Assembly: GCA_950097015.1 (NCBI GenBank)
Contig: CATNEN010000010.1
Span: forward strand, 806,001 to 870,000
Origin: Macrostomum hystrix
Lineage: Eukaryota; Animalia; Platyhelminthes
Reading direction: 5' to 3'
Length of the DNA: 64,000 nucleotides
Shown here in pieces: positions 2,503 to 57,395 of this stretch. The notes below the pieces were generated by a model. That model was not told where the DNA came from and did no database searches. It was given only the letters and a program-made list of their open reading frames with translations. The position numbers and the translations under genes are program-made. Each line of letters begins with the position of its first letter. Position 1 is the first letter of the stretch.

Positions 2503-3291
2503 GCTATCGTTGCTATACTGCTAAATTTAGGATGTAAGTCGCATTGTCGGTACGATTTGGTATGTGTTTATAAAAGTTTACTTTAAGTTTTACTTACACT
2601 GAACACTTCATAAATCTGCTCTTCCGTCCCATTCCTGCCCAGCCTCTCTGGTCCAAGATAGCTGGTATCTTTGCAGAGAATTTACAAAAACTTTCAGCTA
2701 TTTCTCAAGCTGAAGCTGAAGCTTCATAAACTGATAATTGGGACATGCTCGGACAACACTTCAAAGAGCCGTGGCGACAGTCGCGCCTCTGGGCTCTGCC
2801 AGCTGAGCAAGCGGAGGCCTGGCAGGGCTCTCAGAGCGGAAAAAACTGCCTCGCGCCTACATTTCCCTCACTATTTTCCTCTGTGTTTCATCCCGTCTTC
2901 AATTTCCCAAAGGCCCGCATCAAGGGGGAGGGGGGCAAACGAAAAAGGGAGAAACAGAGGCTCGGATTTCCCTGGGCGAGCGAGCTGAGCCGGACTCTAA
3001 TGAGCAGTGTGCTCAGCCGTGCTCAGCCTCTTTTCGTTTTCGCGTGACCCCCCCATCAATGAGGCCTCCGCGGGGAACTGTGAAAACTGCTCCCCCACTG
3101 GTTTCCCATTGTGGGGATGGCGCCAGATTCTGTTTGAGCCATTTTCATCTGCCAACCTGCGAAGTGGCGGAGACACTTCAGCCAAGTTTAACACGCGGCC
3201 ATTCATTCGCCGCTCCACTTGCGAAGCGGCGGGTCAAGGGCCTGCACCGCTGATTGAAAAGTGCCTCCGTCCGCCCGTGCGAGCGCTTCCG

Positions 3292-3768
3292 AGGCTGGCC
3301 TGGTGTGTGAAGCAGCTCCCGCAGCCTCTCACTCTGGCCTGTTGTGTGAAGCAGCACCCGCAGCCTCTCACTCTGGCCTGTTGTGTGAAGCAGCTCCCGC
3401 AGCCTCTCACTCTGGCCTGTTGTGTGAAGCAGCTCCCGCAGCCTCTCACTCTGGCCTGTTGTGTGAAGCAGCTCCCGCAGCCTCTCACTCTGGCCTGGTG
3501 TGTGAAGCAGCTCCCGCAGCCTCTCACTCTGGCCTGTTGTGGGAAGCAGCTCCCGCAGCCTCTCACTCTGGCCTGTTGTGTGAAGCAGCTCCCGCAGCCT
3601 CTCACTCTGGCCTGTTGTGTGAAGCAGCTCCCGCAGCCTCTCACTCTGGCCTGTTGTGTGAAGCAGCTCCCGCAGCCTCTCACTCTGGCCTGTTGTGTGA
3701 AGCAGCTCCCGCAGCCTCTCACTCTGGCCTGTTGTGGGAAGCAGCTCCCGCAGCCTCTCACTCTGGCC
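3292..3768. repeat. 39-bp minisatellite (GCCTGTTGTGTGAAGCAGCTCCCGCAGCCTCTCACTCTG)n
   Basis: About 12 near-identical copies; 13-aa periodicity in the overlapping ORFs. Confidence 0.95.
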
Positions 3769-4729
3769 GAGAACTTCGAAGCGGCGAGCCGGTTGCTGGC
3801 CCGGGGACAGCTGCTAATGAAATTTTCACATCGCAGCGTGTTTGCCCCGGTCCGCTGTGGGAGGCCCACCCTGGGAGTCGGATGTCGGCAACTTGGGCAG
3901 CGAGTGACGGGGCCGGCCTCCACCCCCGGCCCACCGTCCTCTCCGCCCAGCTCACTAATCCCATTGCTGCCGCAAGAATATCCCCTCCGACTAAGCGGGA
4001 AATGCGAATTGTCACGTCGCCGGCCTCTCCGCCTCTCCCCTGCCCCCAGTGCCTACCACCGTCGTGGCCTGAAAAAATCCCAAAAACTCGCCTGCCGCCA
4101 GGCAACTCGGGGAATCCCTCAAGGCCCCCGCCCAACCGCCAGCAGCCCGGGTCCATTGCCGAATCTTCCTTCCCTACTGGAGCTGGGGAAAAACTCCCGA
4201 AAATTCGATTTCGCTCGCCGGCAGAATTCTATTCCGGAGGCGGCGGTCATCGATCCGCGGTGATTCGCAATGGGATGCATCCTGATTCCCATGAAATCAC
4301 CGAGTCCGCAGTGACTAACGCTGACGTAGAGCTGGCCTGAGCAGATCAGCAGCTGATATGCCTAATTCTGATTCGCTGGAGTGTGATCTGGGACCGGACT
4401 GACACACGCGCGCCAATAAAAATAGGATTTCACAGCTGAGACCAATCTTAAGCAGAAGAAGAGATTTGGCCGGCAGACTGGGTGCAACTCTGGGACCAAA
4501 GAGGCCGAATTAAACGGGAAATGGCCTGAGTTGAAGAAGGAGTTGTGAGGCCAGAGACTGAGGGTAGAAAGAGTGGTAAACTGACTAGAGATCACATTGG
4601 GAGAGAGACTGGGAAGGAGAGAATGGGAGAGCTGAGACTGGGAGAGCTGAGGGTGAGAGAGGGGAGAGGGAGACGGCCAAAAAGCTGGTAGGGGCGGAGC
4701 CGAGAGATCAGGGCAGTATGGGTGGCTAA

Positions 4730-8162: not shown

Positions 8163-9252
8163 TGACACAGGGAGACAGGGAGACAGGGAGACAGAGAGAC
8201 AGAGAGACACAGAGACAGAGAGACACAGAGACACAGAGATAGAGAGACAGAGAGACACAGAGACAGAGAGACACAGAGACACAGAGACAGAGAGACACAG
8301 AGACAGAGATACAGAGAGATAGAGAGACAGAGAGACAGAGAGACAGAGAGACAGAGAGACAGAGAGATAGATAGATGGAGAGAAAGAGAGATAGAGAGAC
8401 ACAGAGACAGAGAGAAAGGGAGACAGAGATACAGAGAGATAGAGAGACAGAGAGACAGAGAGACAGAGAGACAGAGAGATAGATAGATGGAGAGAAAGAG
8501 AGATAGAGAGACACAGAGACAGAGAGAAAGGGAGACAGAGAGACACAGAGACAGAGAGACAGAGATAGAGAGACAGAGAGACAGAGAGACAGAGAGACAG
8601 AGAGATAGAGAGACAGAGAGATAGAGATACACAGAGACAGAGAGATATATAGATAGAGAGAAAGAGAGATAGAGAGACACAGAGACAGAGAGACACAGAG
8701 ACACAGAGACAGAGAGATAGATAGATAGACAGAAAGAGAGATAGAGAGACACAGAGACAGAGAGAAAGGGAGACAGAGAGATAGATAGATAGAGAGAAAG
8801 AGAGATAGAGAGACACAGAGACAGAGAGAAAGGGAGACAGAGAGACACAGAGACAGAGAGACAGAGAGATAGAGAGACAGAGAGACAGAGAGACAGAGAG
8901 ACAGAGAGATAGAGAGACAGAGAGATAGAGAGACACAGAGACAGAGAGACACAGAGACAGAGAGACACAGAGACACAGAGACAGAGAGATATATAGATAG
9001 AGAGAAAGAGAGATAGAGAGACACAGAGACAGAGAGACACAGAGACACAGAGACAGAGAGATAGATAGATAGAGAGAAAGAGAGATAGAGAGACACAGAG
9101 ACAGAGAGAAAGGGAGACAGAGAGATAGATAGATAGAGAGAAAGAGAGATAGAGAGACACAGAGACAGAGAGAAAGAGAGATAGAGAGACACAGAGACAG
9201 AGAGACAGAGAGACACAGAGACACAGAGACAGAGAGATAGATAGATAGAGAG
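8163..9252. repeat. AG-rich compound microsatellite (GA/GACA/GATA)
   Basis: Direct reading. On the minus strand it is a CT tract ending at a candidate acceptor of a 41-nt exon (~8162..8122, followed by donor GTAAGC). Confidence 0.95.
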
Positions 9253-32705: not shown

Positions 32706-34223
32706 ATGGAGTCAAACACGCAGCTACCAATTTCTAAGATTTTGATTCTGCTGCTAATCACCATGCTGCTGGTTTCAGCTCGGTCGATCGACAGCCTCTC
32801 AATGAAAGATGACAATGCCTCAAATGTGATTTGCGTGGACTGTCGACTCTACCAGTGCGTCGGACCGGGCCATCCAGTGCTGCTGGACTGCCGGCCGGGC
32901 GCAGAGGCCAACTATGCCAAGCTGGGCTATGCATACCGACGCCTGGCGCTGCTGCTAATGCCGCCGAAGACCGCTGGCGACCGACCAGTCTGGACGTTGG
33001 ACTCTAACAGCACGGAGATAAACATTTTGCCGGCCGGGGCATTCGAAAACCTGGCTGAGAAGCTGACCTCGGGTCATCTCATCTCACTAAAGCATCTGCG
33101 GCAGCCGCAGCTTGACCTGACTGCTCTGGCCAAACTGCCGCAACTGCGCCATCTGGAGGTGGCGGACTCAAATGTCACTTGCCTGAAACAGGGCCAGTTC
33201 GACTCGGCGCCAAAGCTGGTCAGCTTGCAGCTGGTGGAGAACCACGATCTGGAATGCATCCAAACGGATGCCCTGGCAACTCTGGCACACCTAACCAAAC
33301 TCAGCATTCTGCGCAGTCCGCGCTTGAAGTCGCTCAGTGGCGCAGCCACCGCGCCAGCTCTGACCAGCCTGCGGTTAGGAATGCTTGAACTCCCAGGTGG
33401 TGCCCTTTGCAGATTGCGTCACATTCGTCAGCTTCGCCTGAGCGAGATGCCAAAGGACCCGCAGCTGCTGGCCGGGCTAGAAAGCTTGCGCAGTCTGTAT
33501 GTCGACGCTGAAACTGACCTGTCATGGACTGTGGTCGGACTGTCGCCCGCCGCGTGCGCCCAGTGGCCAGACGGCCAACTGCTGCTGAACGGCATCAGCT
33601 TGGCCACTATTACGCTGATCTTTCTCTCGCAGGACTTCAGCCAGTTTTGCAATGTCAACGGGCAGGACAACGCCACGTTCATGCAGCTGTGCGCCTCGGA
33701 AACTAAGACTGCCGATAACTGCTATAATAGCTGCCAGGTAAACGGTTCTACGCCTGTACCTTTAATTTCATCGACTTCTTCGCCAATGGGAATAGAAGTT
33801 TCAGAGCCGGTGTTCGCGGCCGCAGCGGCAGCTGATGCCATGAACCCGACTATAGCTGTCAAAGGCGAAGACAGTGACACCAAATCAACTTCTGGCGTAG
33901 TCTGGAATATCGATCAGCACGGTGTCCTGGGCACAGTTTTGCTCACCGCGGGCGCCTTTCTTGGCGGAGTCCTGGCGGCCGCCCTTTTCTGTAGCTCTCG
34001 TCGGCTTGGCGGCGGAGGCCTGAAGCCTTCCATCATGGAATCCATGGGCAGCTATGGTGGCGCCGTGCCAACTGTCTCCATCAATGGAATCGGCGGTAGC
34101 TGCAGTAACAGCAGCAGCGGCACTCGTTGCAATCTGCCATCGCTGAACGAAGACGAGCCGATTCGGCTGATTGGATACTCGGTCAAGGCGAGCTCTTTGC
34201 AACCGCCAGTGGAGATGATTTAA
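32706..34223 (+). CDS. Single-exon leucine-rich-repeat type I transmembrane protein (505 aa)
   Basis: Signal peptide (ILILLLITMLLVSA), Cys cap, LRRs (LAKLPQLRHLEVADSNVTCL; LATLAHLTKLSI; LAGLESLRSLYV), Ser/Thr stalk, TM segment VLGTVLLTAGAFLGGVLAAALFC, short cytoplasmic tail. ATG immediately preceded by TTATTCACAG. Confidence 0.88.
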   Translation: MESNTQLPISKILILLLITMLLVSARSIDSLSMKDDNASNVICVDCRLYQCVGPGHPVLLDCRPGAEANYAKLGYAYRRLALLLMPPKTAGDRPVWTLDSNSTEINILPAGAFENLAEKLTSGHLISLKHLRQPQLDLTALAKLPQLRHLEVADSNVTCLKQGQFDSAPKLVSLQLVENHDLECIQTDALATLAHLTKLSILRSPRLKSLSGAATAPALTSLRLGMLELPGGALCRLRHIRQLRLSEMPKDPQLLAGLESLRSLYVDAETDLSWTVVGLSPAACAQWPDGQLLLNGISLATITLIFLSQDFSQFCNVNGQDNATFMQLCASETKTADNCYNSCQVNGSTPVPLISSTSSPMGIEVSEPVFAAAAAADAMNPTIAVKGEDSDTKSTSGVVWNIDQHGVLGTVLLTAGAFLGGVLAAALFCSSRRLGGGGLKPSIMESMGSYGGAVPTVSINGIGGSCSNSSSGTRCNLPSLNEDEPIRLIGYSVKASSLQPPVEMI

Positions 34224-41153: not shown

Positions 41154-44100
41154 TCAGGGTTCGCCCAGGTCTGCGCACTGACGCCCAGCTGCCGCCTGCC
41201 CGGCCAGACGGTGTCCAAGCCAATCGGCGCGCAGGCGTTTCAATGCGGCAGCGTCCAGCGCCAGCGGCCGGCCGGGCCTAGCGGCTTCGCCGCTCAGCCG
41301 GTCGACGTAGGGAGCCGCGGCCAGGGAGGCGGCTCCGACAGCCGGCGCAACCAACAGCAAGTCGACGCTGGCGAGCCGGAGGAACACGCCGGCACCGCCG
41401 CCGCACAGTCGAACATGAGCGCCGGCAGCGCCGACAGGACGGCCGCCGTCAGGCAGGCGCACCCGGCAGCAGGCGGCGCAGACGAGGCGACCGCACAGAA
41501 GGCAGAGCGCCGGACGCACAGGCTCGGACACGGCCTGGGCCTGACGCTCGACGCTGACGATGCCACAGTCGCCGCCGATATCTGGGCAACAACGGCGACG
41601 CTGAGGCGAGGCCAGCAGCAGCAGGAGCTCGGAATAGTCGTCTGGCAGCGGAGTCAGCGAGCGAGTCAGCGGAGGCAGTGTGGGCCCGCCCTGTCGGCAC
41701 TCCAGCCTGGGGTCCAGGCACCAGTGGCTGGCCAGGTCGGCCGCTGATGGCGAGGCGGCGAACAGCTCGCAGGGATCCACCGGCAGGCGTAGAAGTTCGG
41801 CGAGATGGCTAAACTCCTTAGACAATTCTGTGTCATTATTCGCGTAGCCGTCTGCTTGCACTAACCCAATATCGTGCTGATAATCGTCGCTGTCCTCGCC
41901 AACCAGGCAGTGGAAGAATCGAACTGAAGAGCGAAGGAACGGCGCTACAGCGGAGCGCAGTTCAGCAGCGAGTTGAAGACCGGAGGCGGCCGGCGAGGAC
42001 CAGATGCCAGCGGCGAAACGGTAGGAGGTGACCAGCTGACGGGGATAAGTGTACTGACAATGCTTCAGGTAATGTCTTTTTAAGCGAAAATGTATGTATT
42101 GAATTTTATGAGTGATGTGGGAACAATGAACTGGTTGCTATTTAAAGAGATATTGTACGAGGGTCCGATGTAAAGGACTTGCTAATCTAGCCGAGCCAGT
42201 TCCTACCTGATCCAGCTGAGATTCAGCCTCCCAGGCGTCTTCACCATCGTCATCTGGCCGTGCTGGAAGCGCCAGGAACACCTGCACCAGACGGGCCGTG
42301 TAGAACAGCCGCGCCAGGCAAGCCTCGGAGCCGGCGCACACCGGGGTGGTGCAGGCGGGCCGCGGCCGACAGTCACGCAGGTACAGGTAGGGCAGCAGGT
42401 AGGTGAGCGCAATTTGGCTGCTCAGCAGGTCGGCTTGTCGCAGGCTGAGTGGGCAGAGTCGCCGGCCATCAGCTGCGGGCAGCAGGAGGAGCAGGTGGGC
42501 CAGGGCCAGCTCGCGGGCCTGCTGTTGCTGGGATTCGCCAGCCGGAACCAGGAGCGCAGCCGCTCTGGCCAGCTGCTGCAGGGCCGGCGAGCGGTGCCGA
42601 CAGCGGTGGCGTCTGTCACGGACATCGTCATCTTCGGCTTCCAGTGAGTTCAGCGAATAGGCCAGGGCCAGAGGCAGGGAGGCGAGGCGTCTCTGAAAGT
42701 CGCCAGCGGAGGCCGCGGCGCACATGCGCTGGTCGCAGGCTTCGCTCAGCTTGTCGATGAGGCCGAGAAGCTGGCCGTCATTGTCCTCCAGCCAAGCCGT
42801 CGGGTCAGGCGGCCGCTCGCAGCGGACGGTGTAGATACCGGAGAAGGAGTTGCCAATGGCGGTGCTCAGCCGTTGCTGAAGGCCAGCCAGCGACACGGGT
42901 ACCAGGCGGCAGGTAGCTGCAATTCAATAAATATCGCGCAAATGCAAGGAGACTCCAGACTCCAGAGGCGAGTCAGAATGAAAACCTACAATTGTCTCCA
43001 TGCCCGCCAGTGAAGTGAAATGCGTTGGCCACGGTGAATCGCAGGCCCTCTAGCCAGTCGTCGTAGGCAACATCGACGGCGTCCAAGGCGCGCGCCCGTT
43101 TGGGAAAGGCGGCGGGCAGCGGCGGTATCAGAGGCAGCAGGTTGTTGCAGGCCTGCCGGCACAGGGGGCAGTGAAACACGCCCGATGGACCGCGGAGATC
43201 CTGTGGAATCTGGTTATGTAGGACATAGGAGGCTCCCTGGTGGAGGCGTCTAACAGCGCACAGTATAGATTCAGCTGATTCCTTAGAGCATAAGACATTT
43301 CCGCGATCCAGCAGAGGACCAGACATTTCTCCGATCCTATAGAGGATTAGACATTTCCCCGATTTCTCAGAGGATTAAACATTTCCCCGATCCAGCAGAG
43401 GACTAGACATTTCCCCGATCCAGCAGAGGACTAGACATTTCCCCGATCCTATAGAGCATAAGACATTTCCGCGATACAGCAGAGGACCAGACATTTCTCC
43501 GATCCTATAGAGGATTAGACATTTCCCCGATTTCTCAGAGGATTAGACATTTCCCTGATCCAGCAGAGGACTAGACATTTCCCCGATCCTATAGAGGATT
43601 AGACATTTCCCCGATTTCTCAGAGGATTAGACATTTCCCCGATCCAGCAGAGGACTAGACATTTCCCCGATCCTATAGAGGATTAGACATTTCCCAGATT
43701 TCTCAGAGGATTAGACATTTCCCCGATTTCTCAGAGGATTAGACATTTCCCCGATTTCTCAGAGGACTAGACATTTCCTCGATTATATAGAGGTTTAGAC
43801 ATTTCCCCGATTCTGTAGAGGATTAGACATTTTTCGATTCTGTAGAGGATTAGACATTTCCCAATTCTGTAGAGGATTAGACATTTCCCAGATTCTGTAG
43901 AGGATTAGACATTTCCCCGATCAATTAGAGACATTCCCTGACTCCTAAGGGGATCAGACATTCCCCGACTCCTAAGGGGATCAGACATTCCCCGACTCCT
44001 AAGGGGATCAGACATTCCCCGACTCCTAAGGGGATCAGACATTCCCCGACTCCTAAGGGGATCAGACATTCCCCGACTCCTAAGAGGATCAGAAATTTCC

Positions 44101-47100
44101 CGATCCTTCAGAAACTCAGAAATTTTCTTCGGTATCTCGGAGGGTCATTTGACCAATCCTTCAGGGCCCTAGCCACTGTCTTAAGTAAGCTTATTATATG
44201 AAAGCTCACCTGAGGGCAGCAAGCCAGGTGAAAGGCGTGCCCGCAGGAAGACACGTGAACGCCCTCCAACAGGTCGGCTTCAACTGGGCCGTTCGGCCAG
44301 TGCGCAGGTCGCAGCTGGCCCCGCTGGCCGGACAGGGCAGTGGACAGCTGAACTAGGCAGCCGCACACTAGCGGACTCGAACCAAGGGCCACAGGTTCGT
44401 CGGCCTGGCATACAATGCAAACTGCGCTTGGCCACTGGAGCTGGTGCTGCTCCAAGCGCCGACTGCCGAGGAGGTACCGCATGGGCTTCGTTGTCATCGC
44501 CATCTGTGGCTTCGCTGCTTCCGCTGCCGCTACATTAGCTCCGGCGGCCAAGCCGGCTGAAAACAGCTTCTGCTGAGCGGCCATTCTAGCGAGAGCAGTC
44601 CTGCGGGCCGCGTCGATTCTCAGCCGGCGAATTCTCTCGGAATCGACATCGCCTGCAACAGAAGTGGCTACTGACGAGTTTGCCACATCGGAGGAGTGAA
44701 CGCTTGCCTTTAACTGGGCCTCGGAACAAAATTCTCGAGCCTGGCTCAGAGCAATGTCCAGAAGGCGTCCAGCCATCGACCCCGTCGGCAGGTGCGATCG
44801 AGGCAGCGAGCTCAGCGTCGAAAGCAGGCGTGGCTGCACAGCGTCGGCTGCCTCGCGAAGTCCGCAGATTAACAGCAGCAGGGAGCGCTCAACTTGAGCC
44901 TCGGACCAGAGCCTGGGCACGCGGCTGCGGACGCAGCGCTCCAGCACTGCCAGGACAACCTGCTGAGTCGCCTCGCAAACCAGCAACCGCCTGAGCGGAG
45001 CATAGGCCTTCGACAACGGTGGCAATGGCGGCAAATTCGGCTGGCAGTCGAGTAGACGCGCAAGGCTGGCTCTGGTTAGTCGTGGATGGCCCGGGCAGAC
45101 TTTCGCCATGGCATCGCCGCGCAGTCGCCATTCACCGTTGGACGGGGAGGGCTCGGCTACGCGCCTGATCACTGCGTAAATATCGGCTGGGGAATGCGTC
45201 AACAATGCGCCGCCGATAGACATGGCGAAGGCTACGGAGTTGGCGACTTCAACAAGATCGGAATGCGGCAACGAGTCGGCTGTTATTATAAGACGCGCCG
45301 TCAGTTCCTCCTCGACAGCATCCATCGCACTGGAGTCGGGCGACACTTCCGGCAAACGTCGCAGTGTGGCGAGGCTCAATAGCAGCCGGAGCGCTTCCTC
45401 GACGCCAGCTCGCATTGCTGTCTCGTCACCGTCAGAATCGGCCCCACCGGACCTGTCCTCGCCGTGCACCCAGCCGAGCACTTCGAAAGCATCCAGCAGA
45501 CGAAACGCGAAGCTTTCAATTTTCTGTGGTGCTGCGGCTGCGGCGGCTTGCAGTGCTCGAATGTCCAGCAGCTGTGGCGCTGGCTCATGCGCGTAGCGAG
45601 CCAGCGCTCGGCCAAGAGCGACGCCGCCACGGCGCCACAGGCCGGCCGCTGCCTGGCCAGACCAGGCCAGCTGGCGGAGCCAAGTGGCTACGGCCGCCTC
45701 CCATCCAGAATGCCCGCTGGAGGCTGCGCAGGCAACAGCAGCGGAGTTGGGTCCGGCCGCAACGGCTAAAGCGCCAACCAGGCGGGCCAGCGGCTGCGCC
45801 TGCGAAATGCCCACCCGGCCATCAAGTAGGGAGCGGAGGCTCGGCCGCATCGACCAACTGCATGATCTGTTATCAGGATCGTCGGGAAGTTCCAGTGTTG
45901 CACAATCAGGCGGCGATTGCCGAAGGCGATCCATCGCCACCTGGAGAGCCTCGGCGCAGTCAGTTGAACTAGCAGCGGAAAGTTGGCTGACTAGCAGTAT
46001 GACTAGGCGGCCGCAGGCAGCATCGAGCCTTTGAACAGCCTCCCAGTCAATGTCGCAGTCAGGCAGCGGGCTGGCGGGGCCTGAAGCTGGCAGTCGGCGA
46101 ATTAGTCCGGCGTCCTGCAAAGCGAGGCAGGCGTCTAGCAAAGCCGGCAGCGCAGACGATATGCCGATGGACTCGACGAATGAGTAGCCGTCGGTTGTCG
46201 ATGGCGACGCTGACCGCAGGAGTCGCTCGGCGTCGGAAAAAGCGAGTTCGGCGACGGAGCACAGGCAGCGGGAGCGCCGATCGCCGGCAGGCAAGTCGAG
46301 CGGCTCGTAAGGCCCGGAGGCGGCCGTTCCAGGACCGATCAGAGCAACTTTAAAGGCGTGCAGAATGACCGCCAAGGCGTTGCGATTAGTCAGTAGGTGG
46401 CGCGACTGGGTTGTTAGGTGAGAACAGATTAGTAGACTCTGTTATCACTAGTCAGGTCATAAAATGGCACACAAAGAAGCAGTATTCTGTGAGCGGGAAA
46501 CTCACCAGCTCGACCGACCCCAAGGCCCGGCTGCAGAGTCTCATAATAGACTGGCCGCCATCTCCGCTGTGGTCCGAATCACATCGGCTCAGCAGCAGCT
46601 GGGCGTATCGGGCCAGCCAGATCTCCGCCAGCTGCCGTCGGCTCTCTGGTCGGGCCAGCAGGCGATTCAGCAGGGCGGCAACGGAGCGCCGAGCGCCGCG
46701 CCACAGCCGATCGGCGGACAGCAGCAACCGCTCAGCGGCAGGTGGAGAGTCGCCGGCCCTGGACAGAAGGCTGTCACAGAGGGCATTGTGGAGATCGGCT
46801 GCAGAATGGTAGAGGTTATGCAAATAACCAACAGAGGTTTAGCAGTCAATCAACCAGCCATCAACCACCACCAAAACCACTTACGGTGTCTCGCAGCCGC
46901 ATCGGCCAGCCAGGCCAGCAGGCGGTGCGCCAGGAAACGCAGCGCAGCCCGCCTGGCCGGCTCCGCCCAGCAACTTCGCAGGCCCGCAGTCCGACCTTCA
47001 CAGCTGCAGCCGTCGGCGGCCAACAGGTCGGCGCAGGCGGCAACGGCAGCGTTGCGTCCGCCTTTGATTGGCGCCACCGCGCGGCCCTCCGCCTCGGCCT

Positions 47101-48432
47101 GGGCGGCGATGCCGGCGACGGCTGGGCCGGGTTGCAGGCCGAGGGAGCCGGCAAGGGCGAAGCGACGCAGTCTGCCGTCAGCGAGAAGAACAACAGCGAA
47201 CTCGGGAGATTCCATTGTGGGCGTCAGCCAAGAGTCCAGCACATCAGCTGCCGCCCCGTCAGCAGCATCCAAGCCAAGACGCAGCAGCTGCTCTGTCAAC
47301 GCATTGAATCTTGCGACCGTATCGGATGGCAATGCTGGAAACGGCGATACGGCCCTGCTTCTATGCTCGGAGCAGCTGCCACAATCGCACAGGTCCCCGC
47401 AGATGCCGGTCAGATTCCACTGCAATATGGCGGACAATATAATAGTCTTCTGACTAGCCTAACCCATTTGTGTCCTACCCAATTCTATCCTGAACCTACT
47501 CCAATCCAATCCTCAACCTACCCCAATCCAATCCTCAACCTACCCCAATCCAATCCTTAAGCTACCCACATCCAATCCTTAAGCTACCCACATCCAATCC
47601 TCAACCTACCCCAATCCAATCCTCAAACTACCCCAATCCAATCCTTAACCTACCCCAATCCAATCCTCAAACTACCCCAATCCAATCCTCAACCTACCCC
47701 AATCCAATCCTTAAGCTACCCACATCCAATCCTTAAGCTACCGACATCCAATCCTTAAGCTACCGACATCCAATCCTTAAGCTACCCACATCCAATCCTC
47801 AACATACCCCAATCCAATCCTCAACCTACCCCAATCCAATCCTCAACCTACCCCAATCCAATCCTCAACCTACCCCAATCCAATCCTCAACCTACCCCAA
47901 TCCAATCCTCAACCTACCCCAATCCAATCCTCAACCTACCCCAATCCAATCCTCAACCTACCCCAATCCAATCCTCAACATACTCCAATCCAATCCTCAA
48001 CATACTCCAATCCTATCCTCAACATACGCTACTCACCCGATATCGATGCCGCCTGTGCTCAGAGCGCATGAAGCAGTTGGCACAGAGCACACTCGAACAG
48101 AGTTGCGAGCAGTCACTGGAAGAATTCATTTAAAATTGTCATAAACAGACACGAGCATCGATTATCAGCACTTGTGACAAGACAAACTGAATCCTAGCTT
48201 ACAGGCACACAAAGGCTGGATCGCCCTCCAGCAATGGAGCGCCGCAGGACACACCAAAGATGCCATTAGCTTGAGGCACTGGCTTCTGTTGAGCAGCAAA
48301 CACAAATGTGTCAAAGGTGTGCAGCAGGTCAACCATGCCAGATTCACATCTGACAGCTAATAGTGGCTCAGTGGCCGCCTGCAGCGTCCGACCCACCTGG
48401 GCAGTGAGCAGCTGGCGCAGCTCATCTGGATC
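41154..48432 (-). CDS. UBR1: UBR1/UBR2-type N-recognin RING E3 ubiquitin ligase, highly divergent (~1714 aa, 8 exons)
   Basis: Exons 48432-48203, 48115-48037, 47419-46885, 46798-46506, 46405-44210, 43209-42990, 42916-42207, 42035-41154; all GT-AG and phase-consistent. UBR box, ClpS-like region, WRRGG (cf. WRRNG), RING-H2 CIVC..SCGHAFHLAC..CPLC, C-terminal LPDDYS..ALCLLCG..APYVD. UBR1 versus UBR2 cannot be distinguished. Confidence 0.92.
43270..44105. repeat. 28-bp and 27-bp intronic minisatellites (ATTAGACATTTCCCCGATTTCTCAGAGG; ATCAGACATTCCCCGACTCCTAAGGGG)
   Basis: Two related units in tandem inside the UBR intron that splits the RING. Confidence 0.93.
47480..48028. repeat. 22-bp intronic minisatellite (CCAATCCAATCCTCAACCTACC)n
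   Basis: About 25 copies filling the intron inside the UBR box. Confidence 0.94.
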
Positions 48433-49076
48433 CTGCAATCAGATCAGGGTGGAATACGAAGGAAATGTCAGAAAATCTGTTACAACTAAACAGCAGCAAA
48501 ATTTGAGCTTTAAAAGATCAACCAGATGATGAGGCATGTAAGAGTTTTTTGAATTGGAAAAAAATAATGAAAAATAGCTATATATCGATCTAGCCATCTA
48601 GCAAAAACAAATATATATTAAGTAATATAATCCCTTCTGGTTAGCAGGACCAGAAATTCTGCATATAATTAATCCCCTAAGTTAGCAAAAACTCACACAT
48701 TATGCTAATAACCCATCAATAAGTTTATAATATACTCCCTTCCAGGTTGTTCTGTTTCAAACCAGGATAGCCAAGATGGAATGCATGTTTTCTTTAATAT
48801 CTGAAGAAGTGGATAAGCCTATGTAAAATAAAGGTGACTAATGCCACTAGAGCTTCTGTAAAGCTCAAAATAACTATAAGCTTTGAAGTGACCAAAAAAT
48901 ATACATTTTCAGATGCACAGCTTGAGCATTTGAAAGTACTCAAAGTACTAAAAAATGTGAACATTTGAAAGAACCAATTCCCCCTTAAGTCAAGAACCAA
49001 CAAAAAAGTTTTAAATAAAAGACTCAGTGTAGTTAGCTAAAGTAGTCTCCTTTGAATATTTTGTATGTGATATATG

Positions 49077-49331
49077 CATACATGTGCAACCTCATGCAAC
49101 TTAGTTTTTGCTTTCATTTGCGACTTAGTTCATTTCATTGCTCTATTTACGACTTAGTTTGCTCTCTTTTGCTCTCTTTTTCTCTCCCCTTTTTCCTTTT
49201 CTTCATGCCTTCCTTTTTTGTCTCTTGGTCCCCCCTTTGATTTTTTTGTGCTTGGTTGATTGTTTTTTTCGACTTACCTTGCTTGGCCCTTGTTTCATCC
49301 GGCTGGTTCGGCCGGGTGTTGCGCATGTATG
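49077..49331. mobile_element. hAT MITE, family A (255 bp)
   Basis: TIRs CATACATGTGCAAC / GTTGCGCATGTATG; perfect 8-bp TSD GATATATG; interior matches the right end of 53652..56783. Confidence 0.9.
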
Positions 49332-49365
49332 GATATATGATACCCTACCCTCTCTTTGTATAGTA

Positions 49366-51363
49366 CAAGGGGTGTCCCAAAAGTAGTGGGAATTTTCAAT
49401 ATAGGTTGAAGTTGAATTTAGATACATGAAATTCCTCAATGTTTTATGAAAGCAGCTTTATGTATCCCTGCAAAACATTTTTAATTTTTCCTTCATTTTC
49501 TAACATTCAAAAGTTATAAGCAATTTAGTGCAGTTCCCAGGGTTCAACTTAGAGAATAGTTAGGACATTAGCAACAGCTCATTATCTAGGTTTTTTATAA
49601 AAACAATTTTGCTTTGTACTTTTTTGCACTGAGTTTACACAATGAAGGCTACATATATGGTAAAGTGTAGAGTATGTCTGGGCTGACAACAAAAATTATG
49701 CTTATGCAGAGCAATGAGCAATGAACAAAACAAAGCCAGGCAGTTTTTAGGCTTTTTATGCATACCAGCTCAGCCAGACATCTTGTCAACAATTGAAGCA
49801 TCTGAAGTTGTTGCAAAAATGTTGGGCATCTACTCAAAAGAGGGATATTAGCATGTAATTTCTACTCTGTGGAGCATGGAACAGAATGGGTTGCAGAAAA
49901 TATGGAACAGAATATGGAACAGCATGGAACAGAAAATATGCAATTGTAAGCATCCTGCAGCACATCTGAAGAAACTTATAATTAGCAAAAGCACAGATTT
50001 TACCAAATTCCAGTTGTTTTGGCCATATGCAGTTTCGGCTATAGCCACTTTGGCCAAAGTCCATTTCAGCCATAGCTGTTTTGGCCAAAAGCTGAATGAG
50101 CATAATAATGCTATATTATGCTACCTGCTACCGAAATGGCAGCCGATTCCACAGCAGTAAATACCTTCTTGGACTATGTAGCCGAACTCATCAGCAATAC
50201 TTGTAACGGCAAGTGAAATGCGCTCATTGGCAGTACTGAACTATTCACATTGGTGCAGAAAATTCACATTTTTACCATTCTTTGTGTACCAAGTCCTCTT
50301 CTTTTATTACTTTTGTACTGCGCAAATACTTCGAGCATGTATTTAAAATTATTTGTCATTGTAAAAGTCAAGTTCATGCTTTGCATCATTGCTATCAAAT
50401 AAAATTAACAACTCTTAAATTACTTAGAAATTAGCCATAAGAATATTGTGAGTTTAAATAAGTATGGGGCCAAACTTTTTTCTGGCCAAAATGGTTAGTG
50501 GCCAAAATTGTTTAAGGCTGAAATGGCTTTTGGCCAAAACACCTATGGCTGAAATGACCAGTTACCCTTTTACCAGTGGATTGAGGATTTTGAGGCTGTT
50601 GATTCAATGTGGTAGCATTGCCAAGATCTGGTTGGCCAAGGACACCTACATCCAAGACTCAAAGCAATCACATTTTGGACCTGTTAAAGACAATGTATGC
50701 CTTACCATCAGGGAAATTGTTGACCAACTAGATATGCTTAAGTCTAAGTCCACACTTCATCATTGCATCATTAGCATGGATTTAATAAAACTCATTGCCA
50801 GGTAGGTTCCTAAGCTTCTCACCCTGGAGATAGAAACAGAGTGACAAAAAATGTACAATATCAATGTTAGCTTGTTAATTGAAGCACAAGGTGGATGGGA
50901 GGCCTTTTGACAGCTCATTGTCACTGGTGATGAAACCTAGCTGTCTTACTTTGAACCCCAACAAAATAAAAATCAAAAGTCGAGGCAGTAAGGGGCTCTG
51001 ACCCTCAAATCAGGCTCATCAAAAGGTTCATTGCCAGAATTAATTTATTCACTGCAGACATGCTAAGAGAAGTACAGCAGCTGCAACGGCAACAATATGG
51101 AGAAGGTCGCCATCCTTGACAACAAGGACATTTGAGTTAAAATTAAGAAAACCTTCAAATGGATTATGCATGATATTGTCATATTTGTCTTCACAACTAC
51201 TTCTTAAAAGTTTATATAAGTTGCACTATGTGCAGCAGATAATAAAGATAAAAAAAATTATAATAATATAGCCACTTTACTTTAATAAAAAATGTAGGAT
51301 TTTGAAATCTAGCTTCAAGCTACATTGAATAGTATAGTCCCACTACTTTTGGGACACCCCTAG
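49366..51363 (+). mobile_element. Defective Tc1/mariner (mariner-type) DNA transposon
   Basis: 26-bp TIRs C(A/T)AGGGGTGTCCCAAAAGTAGTGGGA, TA TSD at both ends. Transposase remnants LTIREIVDQL..IAR*VPKLLT (WVP motif) and IVTGDET* (first catalytic Asp). Confidence 0.88.
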
Positions 51364-53651
51364 TAGCCTAAATCCATAAGCCAACTTTGTTGACAATTAG
51401 GCCTAATTATTTTTCTTCTTTTCTTTTCTTTTCAAAATATTTAGGACATAAAATGATGTTGTACTGCAGGCTTTATCAACTGAACTCTACAGTCAGCAGA
51501 TTTTGTCATATAAACAAAGATTGCTAAGCAATCCTAGCCAAGGCCAAGCCAAGTCAAGCCACATCAATCATGCTATGGCAATGACTCTTGGTCTTGGTTG
51601 CAGGGTTGACTTCACTAGGCTCTATTCGAGGTAGAAGCAAGCCAGTATCAGTAAGCCTAAAAATAGTATCAAACTGCTTTGACTAAAAAATAGATAGGGC
51701 TATTTAAATTATGTATTAGCTTTGCAAGCCTATTTTGTTTAGGCATATAGGCATATTGACAATACTGTTGCAACTATGTTCATAATGAGACACAATATGG
51801 TCGAAAATAACCACAAAGGCGATTAACGTGACACGCTACAATAGGCCTAGCACCTTCACATTTTAGGCCTTTACACTTTATTTTACAAGCACAAAGAAGC
51901 TAATACGGTAAAAAAAGTTCAAAACTGTGAAGTATTTCACAAAAATCACTTGTAACAGTGTCACTTGTTGTTTTACTTTTTCTTAATATTTTGTTCTTAC
52001 TATTAATATTAAGTAATATTATCTTAATATTTTTTCCGCGAAATCTAATCTTCGGCTCCCCGTGTGCTTCTCTATCGCGCTGCGTTGTTTTAAACTTTTG
52101 CGCGATTTCCTACAAATCATATCCGATTGATTTTCCAAACGATATCGCGATTTTCCGCGTGGGTTTTCCACAAGTTTTATTCTTTCTTCCGTATTGATTT
52201 CAAGGTTTATTCTTCATTCAGTATTTTAAGTTAGCTCGTGTTTATTTATTATGTTCTAGCTTAGCCTATTTTATTCTCGTGTTAATAACAGTTAACAGAG
52301 AGTCACAGACTAGTTAAATTACATTGTGTCGATGTATTGTCTTTTGTGCACTCAATGCATTCTTGTGAATGACTGTTATCCTTTCACAGTTGACCAACTA
52401 CATGTCCTTATCTTTGTGTCAACAATTATAAATAAACATTAAAAACTTGTGTGAACAGCTTATTTATTAGGCCTAGCTTTATATTTTTTTTACTGAATTT
52501 TCATAAATATTTTTAAATGAAAATATAGGTGGCAATCAAAAGTCAATAATTGTTGTCCATGATGGATGATGGGAATAAAAAACTTATATATAGCTAAGCT
52601 AAGCTAGCTAGCCTAATTTAGACAAAAATAGTACAAATATTATTATGTAGGGATATTGCTAGCCCTAGCTAATTAATGATCAAGTATGCCATAGGCCTAA
52701 GGCTAAATTCATCTAATTTATATAGCTACTTTTATCTATATTTGGCTTCTTGTTTTCATGGTCATTAGACAAATCTATAGATTTTTGCACAATTGTCTGT
52801 AATGTATAAACTGTGAGTAGGTTGCATAGGCCCCCATATATAGTTTGCGAGAAAAAGTATTTGATTCATTATTTACAATGATAGATTATATCTGCTTGTA
52901 TGCTTTTTAGTGTAGGCCTAAACATAGCCAATTGATTTTGTATTCTTTAGTATTTAAATAAATACAATAAATGTGTATAGCCAATATTTTAATATGCAAA
53001 AAGTTCCTATTTACAATAGAAACCCAGTTGCTTATTTTTCTTGAAAACTTCACAACTACTTGTTAAAAGTTTATATAAGTTGCACAATGTGCCCTGGGGA
53101 ACTGCACTAAATTGCTCAACTTTTGAATGCTGAGCTTTTGAATACAAACTTCCTAATTATTGTACTATCATTTATATAGATACAGATATAGAACAAATCC
53201 AATCATTTTCTGAATCTAGATAAAGAAAATTTGGAGATGCTTTTATTAAAAGCATCTTTTGACCCTTTGTATCATACAATCATTTGCACTTAATCTCAAA
53301 CATGCACTATTTTGTAAGATTTTAAAAGTGTACTGATTAAATTATTTATTTGAAAGTTAGAAAGTCTTGAAAACAAATTGATTATCCATATGAATACTCA
53401 AAAAATTGGCACTTTTCTGAATACTACCAAAAAATGGTTACATCTCCATATAGTAAGTCAGGGGTCGGAAACTCAGACCCGCAGGCAAGATGCCACCCTC
53501 AAAGCTCCAAAATCTGGCCTGTTGCCTTTCTTTTGACTGTCTTGCCTCTCCCATGCTTTATCTCTCTCCTGTCTTTTCTCTCGTATACCTTATCCCTCCC
53601 ATGTCTTATCTTTCCCCTGTCTTATCTTTCCTGTGCCTTATCCCTCCTATG

Positions 53652-56600
53652 CATACATGTGCAACCTCCCAAACTTAGCCGGCCGTGCGACTTAGTTTTT
53701 AAGCCTATATTGCTTAACATTAGATTGTTCTGATGTGATTTTGTATGTTTTTCAATTGTAAATGTACAAGAAAGTTTTAGTTGACAATTTCACAATTTTA
53801 CTTTCATATTTCTAGAAATGCTACTACCCCATTCCTCTTATATTTTCTTGCAGATCATTTTCAAGATTGTTTGTAACTAGTGAAATGAAGACATGGTTTA
53901 TGTATACTCAAAATGCAGAAAATTTGCCGAAGTCTGCAATACAGTGCCGCTTTTGCCTTCAGTATACAAAAAGCATTCCACGAGCAGTAAATCTTGCACA
54001 GCAATGAAAATCGAAATTTGCAACAGCAGAGGGTTACATTCCTAGTGATCATGAAAAAGATAGTGTACAAAGAAAACTTTAGGAGCATTCATCAAATGCA
54101 CTTCATTGCGAGGCTGTACAATGGATGAAAGATAAATACAACTCAATACTTGCGAGGCAAATTGAACAGTTAAATAATGCAGCATGATTGGCAAAAGCCA
54201 AAAGAGATGAAAGAGATGAGATAACAGCTCGTGTTTTGACAACTGTCTATGCGGAGGTTAAATCTAATGTTCCTTTCAGTGCACATAACCAGATGATCGA
54301 ACTGCAAAGTAAAAATGGCTTAGATATGGGTACTCATCATAGACACCAAAAAAGTGCCACTGCCATGGCTGCATCGATAAGCACAATGCACAACTCACTG
54401 GTAAAGTATATTCTAAGTCAAACATCAAAGAATCTTCCTATTGCTATAGTACTGGACACAACTTCTGATATACACTCGAATAGCTACTTAATAGTCTACT
54501 TTAGAATGCTTGAGAATAGCAAACATATCATGTATTTCTATCGGTTTAAGTGTTTAACCGAAGTAGAAACAGGACGAAGTTTATATGAAATGCTCATTAC
54601 GATGTTCTCTGCTGATAACCTGCACACAAACATTTCTGAAATGGGGTGTTACAACTGATGGCGCATCTGTTATGACAGGAAATCGAGCTGGAATGGTAAG
54701 CCTACTAAGGCCTTGGGCGAAAAACAATTTCTTCCGACATAATTGTGCAGCACATAAGTTGGAACTTGCAATATATCATGCCTTTGAGAGTTTTCCATAT
54801 ATGCAACACTTAGATTCAAGCATAAATGCACTGCATACATTTTATATGCGTCATTCAGTAAAACGCAAGGCATCTCTGGCTCAGACTTCTGAAGCAATGG
54901 AGCTTGTCTTGTATCAACTAAAGAGAATATATCGCATAAGATGGGTTGCATCTGAATTATCTGCTCTAGATGTTGTCCAAAAGTCATATTTTCTACTGCT
55001 AACAAATTTGGAAAACATCAATTCGCCATCCTCAGATTTTGATGAAGATACCAAATCAACTGCATCAGGATTGCTGAAGACACTACAGAATGTTCGTTAC
55101 TATTCTTTACACATCTTCATTACAGATGTCCTTAGGCAACTGGAGTTTCAATCATTACAGTTTCAAAGGGCCAGGGGTACATTCATTGGACTGCGTAAAC
55201 GCCACAGTGACCTAATTCTGTCCTTACGAAATTTAGAGACAAATGATGGTCCACGAATAACAGACTTCTTGAATAGCTGCAGATGCCGTAAAGTCGTTGG
55301 GCCTGGTGATGAGACAGAATTCCGTGCACGATGCAGCACAAGGGACCTATCTCAATCAAACTTTCTATGTCCTGGAGACTGTGATGAAACACAAATGTAT
55401 GAGCTTAAGCAACCATTAAGTGTACGCCGACAAGCCTGCAGAGATGCAACAGAGAGAGGCATTGCTGCACAATTTCCAGCACTAGATGATATTAGAAGCA
55501 CCATAATTGATAGCATTATTACACACCTAGAAAGTTATTTTCCTGAAGATGACTACTCGATATTTGATGTACTGAATCCAGAGTCATTGCCCACTGTAGA
55601 AACAATGCGAAATGTGTTTACTTACAGTTCGAGGATAATTCCACTTGCTAGACGCTTCGGCTTGCAAGATGAGGATCCAGATTCAGCAGAAGGCTCTCCC
55701 TCAGATTCGGATTCCACAGATGGTGAAACTGAAACCCGAAATTTGCAGAGGACAATTTCTGGACAGTTTCAGATACTCATTCAGAGCTTGCTTTCTCACA
55801 AAGTTGATTTCTGCACATATCGAAATGGTGGTCCCAAACAATTCTGGAGTCATTTTCTTCAAAAGAAAACCGTAGACTGGTTGCCGAGAATAAAGCTGAG
55901 ATTTCTCATTCAAATTGTTCTAACTGAGCGTGGATTTTCCATCTACAAGCATATTGCATATGACAGGAGGTCTCGTCTAACAGCAGAGACCTTAGAACAT
56001 CTATTGCGGATTCGTATAAATGGACCACCACTGAAAAGTTTTACAGCAGATGCATATGTAAATGACTAGCTCAAGACACACTGGGCATCAGATGCTCCAG
56101 GAGGTCGTCAGCAACAGAGCTCAGATGAAGATGATGATCCTGATGAAAAGTCTAACTTACAGAGTGGACTCTTCTAACTTTTATTGAATTATACAGAAAA
56201 GACAAGGCATAAAACTTACATAATGTCTCACGAATAAAATATATTAATTTTTAGCGGCCACCGCCACAGATATGCCTAACACCTTTCTGCGCATCGCACT
56301 TATTTTGTGGCCTACAGTCCAAAAAATGTAACTTTTGTTTTCACTCGACAGTTCATGAGCCACTTAGAAGCGGCTTAGTTCGTTTCATTGCTCTAATTAC
56401 GACTTAGTTTGCTATCATTTGCGACTTAGTTCGTTTCATTGCTCTATTTACGACTTAGTTTGCTCTCATTTGCGACTTAGTTTGCTCTCATTTGCGACTT
56501 AGTTTGCTCTCATTTGCGACTTAGTTTGCTCTCATTTACGAATACGACTTAGTTTAGTATATCTACTCTATTCTACTCTTTCTTTCTTTGTTTTATCACT

Positions 56601-56783
56601 TTCTTTCCCGTATTCTCTCTTTCTTTTTATTTTTCTCTCCCCTTTTTCCTCTTCTTCACGCCTTCCTTTTTTGTCCCTTGGTCCCCCCTTTGATTTTTTG
56701 CGCTTGGTCGATTGATTTTTGCGACTTACCTTGCTTGGCCCTCGTTTCAGCCAGCCGGGTCGGCCGTGTGTTGCGCATGTATG
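53652..56783 (+). mobile_element. hAT DNA transposon, family A (3132 bp)
   Basis: TIRs CATACATGTGCAAC / GTTGCGCATGTATG; 8-bp TSD CTCCTATG/CTCCCATG; subterminal 22-bp GCGACTTAG-containing repeats at 56370-56535. Confidence 0.9.
54188..56069 (+). pseudogene. hAT transposase (ZNF862/KIAA1586-like), disrupted
   Basis: VLDTTSD, TDGASVMTG, CAAHKLELA, RWVAS, TERGFS, RRSRL motifs. In-frame TGA at 54185 and a frameshift near 54640. Confidence 0.88.
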
Positions 56784-57104
56784 CTCCCATGTCTCATCTC
56801 TCCCATTTCTCATCTCGCCTATGTCTCATCTTCCCTGCATTCGTTTCTCTGTCTCATATATCTACAGTCAATGCAGCCCACTGTTGTCTTTAAGGTTCTC
56901 TTTGGCCCACTAGCTAATAAGTTTTCTGGCCCTTGCAGTAGGTAGCTTAGGTAGCTGTGTATCTAGAAACTCTTTTATATTGAAGTCTAGGTAAAAGCCA
57001 AGGATTAAGTAATTAAAGTTGAGGTTCTTCAATTCAGATCCCATATGCCATTTGTTACCCAAGTATTCTCTGAACCCGACACCTCCAGCCTCTCGATCTT
57101 ACTG

Positions 57105-57395
57105 ATGGCCAGCTCCTTGGAGTCCATGCTGAAGCAGCAGGTGTCCGTGATCACAGCAGATGGCCGGGTCATTGTCGGCACCCTGCGCGGTTTCGACAAT
57201 GCCGTCAATTTAATCCTGGAGGACTCCGTGGAGCGAGTGTTCTCGGCCAACAGCCCGGTGGAGGCTGTGCCTCTGGGTCTCTACATCATCCGCGGTGACA
57301 ATGTGAGCCTGGTCGGCGAACTGGACCCGGAAATCGAGCGCCGCATGGACCTGAGCCGCCTGCAGGCCGAGCCGCTGCGGCCTGTAGTCACGTGA
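57105..57395 (+). CDS. LSM8: U6 snRNA-associated Sm-like protein LSm8 (96 aa, intronless)
   Basis: MASSLESMLKQQVSVITADGRVIVGTLRGFD..NLIL..ERVFS..LGLYIIRGDNV..AEPL; true ATG at 57105. Confidence 0.96.
   Translation: MASSLESMLKQQVSVITADGRVIVGTLRGFDNAVNLILEDSVERVFSANSPVEAVPLGLYIIRGDNVSLVGELDPEIERRMDLSRLQAEPLRPVVT

Follow-up and report, generated by a model that had tools for sequence, protein, structure and literature searches.

A UBR1-family gene of Macrostomum hystrix that has lost N-degron selectivity residues of its UBR box

The 64,000-nucleotide stretch of Macrostomum hystrix DNA analysed here (the window; contig CATNEN010000010.1, positions 806,001 to 870,000) contains an expressed, intact and spliced-leader (SL) trans-spliced gene of the UBR1 family. 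Alignment indicates that its UBR box has retained the ligands of the zinc scaffold and lost the residues that determine type-1 selectivity, and that the type-2 motif of the ClpS-like domain is lost in this species and in Macrostomum lignano alike. The UBR box is regarded as a domain for reading basic N-termini, and across animals, plants and fungi its acidic pocket hardly changes. We consider it probable that the gene is a lineage-specific, fast-evolving duplicate of a UBR1/UBR2-type RING E3 that has lost its N-degron selectivity residues and chooses its substrates by other means. The gene represents natural variation within an established enzyme family and does not constitute a new type of system.

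Gene structure and expression

The gene lies on the minus strand between positions 41154 and 48432 and consists of 8 exons and 7 introns that encode a protein of about 1724 amino acids; summed, the exons give 5172 coding nucleotides with zero internal stops. The UBR box is spread across three exons, and every junction is of the GT..AG type on the minus strand. Exon 1 (48203–48432) supplies the N-terminal 76 codons and the first part of the box, with the equivalent of C99 at 48246–48244 and C112 at the exon end. Exon 2 (48037–48115) encodes the middle of the box (C115, L118, S120, C124, C127, H133 and H136), and exon 3 (46885–47419) encodes its end, CDCGSCSEH at 47389–47363, together with the remnant of a ClpS-like domain. 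Read through the junctions, exon 1 finishes in ...CGAPLLEGDPAFVC (in its longer form ...SCGAPLLEGDPAFVC) plus 2 nt, exon 2 contributes the third base of the Leu codon and then DCSQLCSSVLCANCFMRSEHRRHRYR, and exon 3 opens with WNLTGICGDLCDCGSCSEH.

The remaining exons complete a UBR1-like protein. Exon 4 (46506–46798) resembles UBR1/2 proteins, exon 5 (44210–46405; 732 codons) encodes the UBR1-like central region together with the first RING half, exon 6 (42990–43209) carries the second half, and exon 8 (41154–42062, including the stop codon) encodes a C-terminal domain of the PRT6_C/UBLC type. Exon 7 (42207–42916) and exon 8 were placed by frame and similarity and partly by a transcript loose end: the loose end sets the start of exon 7, its donor at about 42207 was chosen by frame and the presence of a GT, its similarity is a tblastx match to the M. 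lignano locus L001 described below, and the exon 8 acceptor is placed at about 42062.

Transcript contigs from three public runs of one study (X1–X3), mapped onto positions 42900–48800, match the exons at 99–100% identity. The joint between 48203 and 48115 is present in two of the runs and that between 48037 and 47419 in all three, and three further joints occur in transcripts (46885>46798, 46506>46405 and 44210>43209). Seen on the plus strand, the stretches that the transcripts skip are bounded by CT..AC, equivalent to GT..AG on the minus strand. An earlier note, made from the genomic letters, had assembled the box by splicing across 47330–48250; because the transcripts skip exactly the introns removed in that reading, the three-exon box is real. 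Across 47236–47419, which includes the codons of the shortened loop discussed below, the contigs and the window differ by no indel and no letter. An assembly error at the loop deletion is ruled out, the three transcript sets being identical there, and the acidic residues missing from the genomic reading are not restored in cDNA.

Intron 2 (47420–48036, 617 nt), which transcripts of the three runs skip, is filled by a 22-nt minisatellite of about 25 copies (47474–48027). Its minus-strand unit is approximately GGATTGGATTGGGGTAGGTTGA and resembles a 22-nt array of 37 copies with the unit GGATTGGGGATCCTAAAGGATT at positions 3743–4566 of the M. lignano locus L002, where the array occupies another, non-corresponding intron, this time within the canonical UBR1 gene. 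No such array is present in the orthologous intron of L001. The minisatellite probably belongs to a satellite family dispersed in Macrostomum.

At the 5′ end, the transcripts diverge from the genome at 48433 and continue into the Macrostomum spliced-leader tail (...GACTCAATTTATTGCATG), which equals the 3′ end of the ATG-terminated M. lignano spliced leader as printed in PMC5173321. The loose ends fall at 48433 in runs X1–X3, next to an AG trans-splice acceptor at 48433–48434 on the minus strand, and the tail sequence was not found anywhere in the window. An upstream 5′ exon within the window was considered and rejected, the extra transcript sequence being the spliced leader. The leader ATG is in frame with exon 1 and yields M-D-P-D-E-L. 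It apparently provides the start codon, the genome at 48432–48434 on the minus strand reading ...gcag followed by GATCCAGAT, with no ATG; the next in-frame Met lies 33 codons downstream of the leader-supplied start. In the M. lignano orthologue, the equivalent start codon is a genomic ATG (ATGGACCCA, M-D-P; L001 about 8339–8347). The gene makes a clear case for flatworms putting the SL AUG to functional use.

The UBR box and its type-1 pocket

The three exon pieces of the box were aligned separately to 28 canonical boxes (mafft --addfragments). The first cysteine is numbered C99 because the aligned vertebrate UBR1 matches human UBR1 in the PDB (5tdc; full-length 9wbw). All 11 zinc ligands found in canonical boxes are aligned in the window box (C99, C112, C115, C124, C127, H133, H136, C149, C151, C163 and H166), in agreement with the earlier note, which had aligned them with human UBR1. 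Exon 2 alone shows 46–54% identity to canonical boxes across 26 amino acids. Pfam zf-UBR (PF02207) gave no match with the exon pieces scanned singly, the pieces being too short or too divergent, and a PDB search with the 25-aa exon 2 returned no match.

In human UBR1, the first pocket is formed by D118, T120, F148, D150 and D153; selectivity for Arg, Lys and His is set by D118, T120 and D153, and the amino group and first peptide bond are held by T120, F148 and D150 (PMC8346999). In the window box, D118 is replaced by Leu and T120 by Ser, and D150 is retained. The stretch D-x-E-A-W-x-x-x-x-x that should follow C151-G is missing, which deletes D153 and the EAW loop and leaves a C151–C163 spacer of 2 residues (GS) against 11 in canonical boxes. 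The deletion falls inside one continuous exon, exon 3.

These columns scarcely vary elsewhere. In a comparison set of 99 distinct UBR1/2/PRT6 boxes, which is biased towards insects, D118 is found in 98, T120 in 98, D150 in 99, D153 in 99 and the 11-residue C151–C163 loop in 98, and a loss of type-1 selectivity residues of the kind in the window was not seen among these 99 other boxes. Taking the columns conserved in at least 90% of boxes, the window matches 18 of 30, its M. lignano orthologue (L001) 22 of 30 and the canonical M. lignano UBR1 (L002) 25 of 30. The earlier note had listed D118L, F148L, D153S and a deletion of the loop before the last Cys within a single exon. The first and last of these are borne out by the alignment and by the transcripts. 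Residue D153 is indeed gone, but it is better described as deleted with the loop (in-frame gaps of 24 and 9 nt relative to the orthologue) than as changed to Ser. Position 148 does hold Leu, but the replacement is not diagnostic and carries no weight because this position is variable in canonical boxes, with C, Y, F, R or M, and the M. lignano orthologue likewise has Leu there. Two residues ahead of C149, the window and L001 both have an additional Asp (position 147; GDLCDC) that could partly make up for the lost charge.

The ClpS-like N-domain

Two observations go beyond the earlier note: the type-2 motif of the ClpS-like domain is degenerate, and the type-1 loss is recent. A remnant in exon 3 aligns with the ClpS-like N-domain of UBR1/2 proteins, with EFAVVLLADGRLRRF at 47203–47159 and AEAEGRAV at 47098–47075; it reads AVVLL...ALAGSLGL...AVAGIAAQAEAEGRAV where UBR1/2 proteins have, for example, CMLFNDEVHTYEQVI...EAIGFATTVDRDGRRSV. 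In ClpS, the amino group of the substrate is held at an entrance made up of N34, D35, T38, M40 and H66, residues that the N-domain of UBR1 has conserved (PMC8346999). The corresponding pattern, ND(E/D)xH(S/T)(F/Y), is present in 23 of 26 canonical proteins. The window has ADGRLRR in its place, identical in L001, so that the entrance Asn has become Ala and the position of the UBR1 His has become Leu. Pfam ClpS matches canonical proteins at 1e-12 to 1e-18 and gave no match on single window exons at E up to 1. Because this degenerate stretch is among the best-conserved parts between the window gene and its M. lignano orthologue, it seems to be kept for a different role.

RING, C-terminal domain and family assignment

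The RING pattern CxxC...CGHxxHxxC...CPLC runs complete through exons 5 and 6, and its insert is shortened; CIVC starts at 44419, CGHAFHLAC stands at the end of exon 5 and CPLC occupies 43170–43159. The junction between the two exons is backed by transcripts, and the earlier description of the RING as intact is upheld. Exon 6 is 82% identical to M. lignano P0002/P0054, and the last exon matches Pfam PRT6_C (PF18995) at 8.7e-24. The UBR1-like winged-helix (PF22960) gave no Pfam match on the 755-aa exon 5 ORF at E up to 1; phmmer aligns the corresponding region of this ORF to the same part of UBR1/2 proteins.

In an exhaustive HMMER search, the 755-aa exon 5 ORF matched 53 proteins. The full-length matches with a recognisable box or N-domain are of the UBR1/UBR2 type with canonical boxes and come from vertebrates, a tunicate, arthropods, molluscs and nematodes; no UBR3-type box was found among the 53. 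Pfam zf-UBR, ClpS, winged-helix and PRT6_C were found in the canonical proteins that were scanned, or by annotation. Two proteins from Logan assemblies, P0010 and P0076, represent a natural pocket variant in otherwise canonical UBR1/2 proteins: their box reads CETRSVSVMC, with D118 as Arg and T120 as Val, and CDCGDENAW is kept.

An orthologue and a canonical paralogue in Macrostomum lignano

The M. lignano locus L001 (NIVC01004716.1; gene model PAA46742.1, also P0054 and BOX15_Mlig010501g1) is collinear with the window across the neighbourhood, from the LSM gene through the UBR gene and an unnamed conserved stretch to the LRR gene, and because the neighbours on either side are collinear we regard it as the positional orthologue. 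In the window, the LSM-domain protein (57132–57395, plus strand) is 93% identical to its M. lignano neighbour, the synteny with L001 extends to the LRR protein (32706–34223, plus strand), and a further neighbouring gene, at 3007–4263 on the plus strand, is an ORF with galaxin-like repeats. The UBR and LSM genes are separated by an AT-rich block (48500–57100; 32–40% GC against about 60% in the gene) that measures 8.7 kb in the window and about 5.2 kb in M. lignano. This block holds an intact 494-aa ORF (54585–56069, plus strand) that looks transposase-like by eye and had no Pfam match at 1e-3.

The box exons of L001 are intact upstream of the gene model, with the same intron positions as in the window, and give a box with the sequence ...DCSPDSADCALC... 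and ...GDLCDCGDPDALSSGSICGCSEH. These three N-terminal exons (L001 8339–9999) are missing from the deposited model PAA46742.1, which also stops after the RING. At a protein identity of about 65% to the window gene, L001 retains D118, D150 and D153, and its loop of 13 residues bears the GDxxA signature (GDPDAL). At the DNA level, two gaps that keep the frame (24 and 9 nt) set the window apart here, and both adjoin short GGC and TGC repeats in our reading of the alignment. The type-1 loss is recent and lineage-specific, since D118, D150, D153 and the loop are all still present in L001, and the alignment places the loss of the pocket after the split from the M. lignano lineage. The loss of the type-2 motif, being common to the window and L001, is the older change.

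M. lignano also has a canonical UBR1, at locus L002 (NIVC01003038.1, protein P0005). Its box is canonical (CTADPTSVMC; GGYCDCGDPEAF...C..H), with the DPT and CDCGDPEAF motifs, and so is its N-domain motif (VLYNDEVHSY). P0005 is 99% identical to the UniProt model P0001 over their common part, and for this reason both are taken to represent the canonical M. lignano gene. P0001 was rejected as a full-length relative, its first ~1200 residues not being UBR-like and containing no box; the UniProt entry A0A1I8GLY8 (3038 aa) has about 1200 non-UBR residues ahead of a canonical UBR1. Since M. lignano has both L001 and L002, the genus possesses a normal UBR1 and a divergent copy. The earlier proposal that the M. 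hystrix gene is a paralogue of an N-recognin is supported only indirectly, from M. lignano, in which the canonical copy is seen.

A maximum-likelihood tree of the exon 5 region groups the window gene with P0054 (support 100) and makes the pair the sister group of M. lignano UBR1 (SH-aLRT 99), with a long stem of 2.29 substitutions per site, a grouping that may be inflated by a shared, odd, GC-rich amino-acid composition and by long branches. Taken with the N-domain remnant and the list of matches, the tree points to descent from a UBR1/2-type gene. A protein homologue search with exon 3 (178 aa) returned no match, and no transcript-derived orthologues from other Macrostomum species.

Selection on the gene

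Substitution rates were estimated against L001 by the Nei–Gojobori method, exon by exon, over 1644 aligned codons. Overall, dN is 0.27, dS is 1.05 and omega is 0.26; exon 2, in the box, has an omega of 0.11 and exon 6, in the RING, 0.13. These omega values are rough because dS is about 1, near saturation. A dS of this size to the closest M. lignano gene also shows that the window comes from a congener and not from M. lignano. The gene is clearly not evolving neutrally and is under purifying selection, and an omega of 0.26 also allows relaxed constraint. A pseudogene was rejected as the main reading, given the intact ORF, the expression and the omega of 0.26.

A rival reading would make the gene a decaying, redundant duplicate under relaxed selection, its box and N-domain surviving as relics with no distinct role and the whole heading towards a pseudogene. 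The long stem branch and odd amino-acid composition would fit such a course, as would an omega that is high for a conserved E3, winged-helix and ClpS regions that Pfam does not recognise, and low transcript coverage. We nevertheless think it unlikely. The 1724-codon ORF and its 7 introns are intact, the exons are conserved in the orthologue despite a dS of about 1, and even the degenerate N-domain stretch belongs to the best-conserved parts between the two species. The ligands of the RING and all 11 ligands of the box are retained, and for the box we roughly estimate the chance of this at about 0.01 given about 65% identity.

What the altered box may do

The earlier note's proposal of a repurposed E3 with no or altered degron specificity finds partial support: at the level of sequence, the intact RING ligands, the retained zinc ligands and the lost selectivity residues agree with it, and the change of function itself is an inference. 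Judged by its sequence, the protein most likely acts as a RING E3, functionally resembling UBR3, that has ceased to read N-terminal Arg, Lys or His or bulky hydrophobic N-termini. Such a protein would still work with an E2 as a RING E3. It would not choose substrates by N-terminal Arg, Lys or His, or by bulky hydrophobic residues, through the canonical pockets, and would recognise them through other surfaces, for example by way of internal degrons. Internal degrons are used by UBR1 for some of its substrates, and by UBR3. Alternatively, a remodelled and less acidic pocket might use D150 to contact the α-amino group.

Might the box still serve a working type-1 N-recognin? In that case D150, backbone carbonyls and Asp 147 or a Glu/Asp of the first strand would rebuild the acidic site, and Arg, Lys and His would still be read, perhaps more weakly. 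The retained D150, which is the α-amino contact, the retained zinc ligands, the GDLCDC sequence common to the window and L001, and the omega of about 0.11 for the exon 2 part of the box are in keeping with this. We hold it to be rather unlikely nonetheless, in view of the near-invariance of the selectivity residues D118 and D153 (PMC8346999) in the 99 boxes. Moreover, the whole EAW loop bearing D153 is missing, so that the pocket wall would be gone, beyond the loss of charge.

It seems quite unlikely that the remodelled box (L118, S120, L148, D150 and the Gly-Ser loop) has become a new reader of small, hydrophobic or modified N-termini. The α-amino contact would then have been kept through D150; the loop was lost after the split from the M. 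lignano lineage (dS of about 1). If true, this would be a natural example of the rewriting of UBR-box specificity. That the gene is a flatworm UBR3 orthologue and not a UBR1 duplicate is very improbable. The two share their domain plan, with a UBR box, RING and PRT6_C and no working N-domain, but no UBR3-type box occurs in the 53 matches, the recognisable ones being UBR1/2-type, a ClpS-like remnant is recognisable whereas UBR3 is without that domain, the tree shows M. lignano UBR1 as the sister of the gene, and the L001 box has a UBR1-like GDxxA loop.

Comparison with known systems

The favoured reading, a divergent UBR1/UBR2-type RING E3 duplicate that selects substrates by other means than N-degrons, can be set against several known proteins. 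With UBR1 and UBR2 the gene shares the domain order of UBR box, ClpS-like region, central region, RING and PRT6_C/UBLC, as well as the 11 zinc ligands and the CxxC...CGHxxHxxC...CPLC pattern of the RING, and its best matches come from this family; the intron positions in the box are those of M. lignano UBR1. It differs from them in L118 and S120, in the absence of D153 and the EAW loop, with a spacer of 2 residues against 11, in having ADGRL in the N-domain where they have NDExH, and in a shorter RING insert, and no Pfam winged-helix or ClpS was detected in the window exons. Structures available for the family include the human box (3NY1, 5TDC, 3NY3 and 5TDA), the full-length protein (9WBW and 9WBV) and the yeast protein (7MEX).

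The nearest functional analogy is UBR3, which is likewise a UBR-box RING E3, is not characterised as an N-recognin and has no working type-2 domain. The window gene differs from it in appearing to derive from UBR1/2, as judged by the N-domain remnant and the tree position, and UBR3 retains a full-length loop after CDCGD. Plant PRT6 (box structures 6LHN and 7XWD) is also a UBR-box RING E3 with a PRT6_C domain and no type-2 N-domain function; unlike the predicted M. hystrix protein, it has retained an acidic type-1 pocket and recognises N-terminal Arg. Since E3s with UBR boxes that are not N-recognins (UBR3, UBR6 and UBR7) are already known, the present case leaves knowledge of the pathway unchanged.

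The closest relative is the M. lignano orthologue (PAA46742.1, L001), which shares neighbours, intron positions, the degenerate N-domain motif and Leu at position 148 at about 65% identity, and differs in keeping D118, D150, D153 and the 13-residue loop (GDPDAL), in its genomic ATG and in a deposited model that is without the box exons. The pair thus differs in exactly the acidic pocket, kept in M. lignano and deleted in M. hystrix, with the scaffold, RING and C-terminus kept in both. This provides a natural comparison of what a UBR fold does without the reading of Arg, Lys and His, and of how duplicated N-recognins are redeployed. Because Macrostomum is amenable to RNAi and transgenesis, the question of what the fold does is a testable one.
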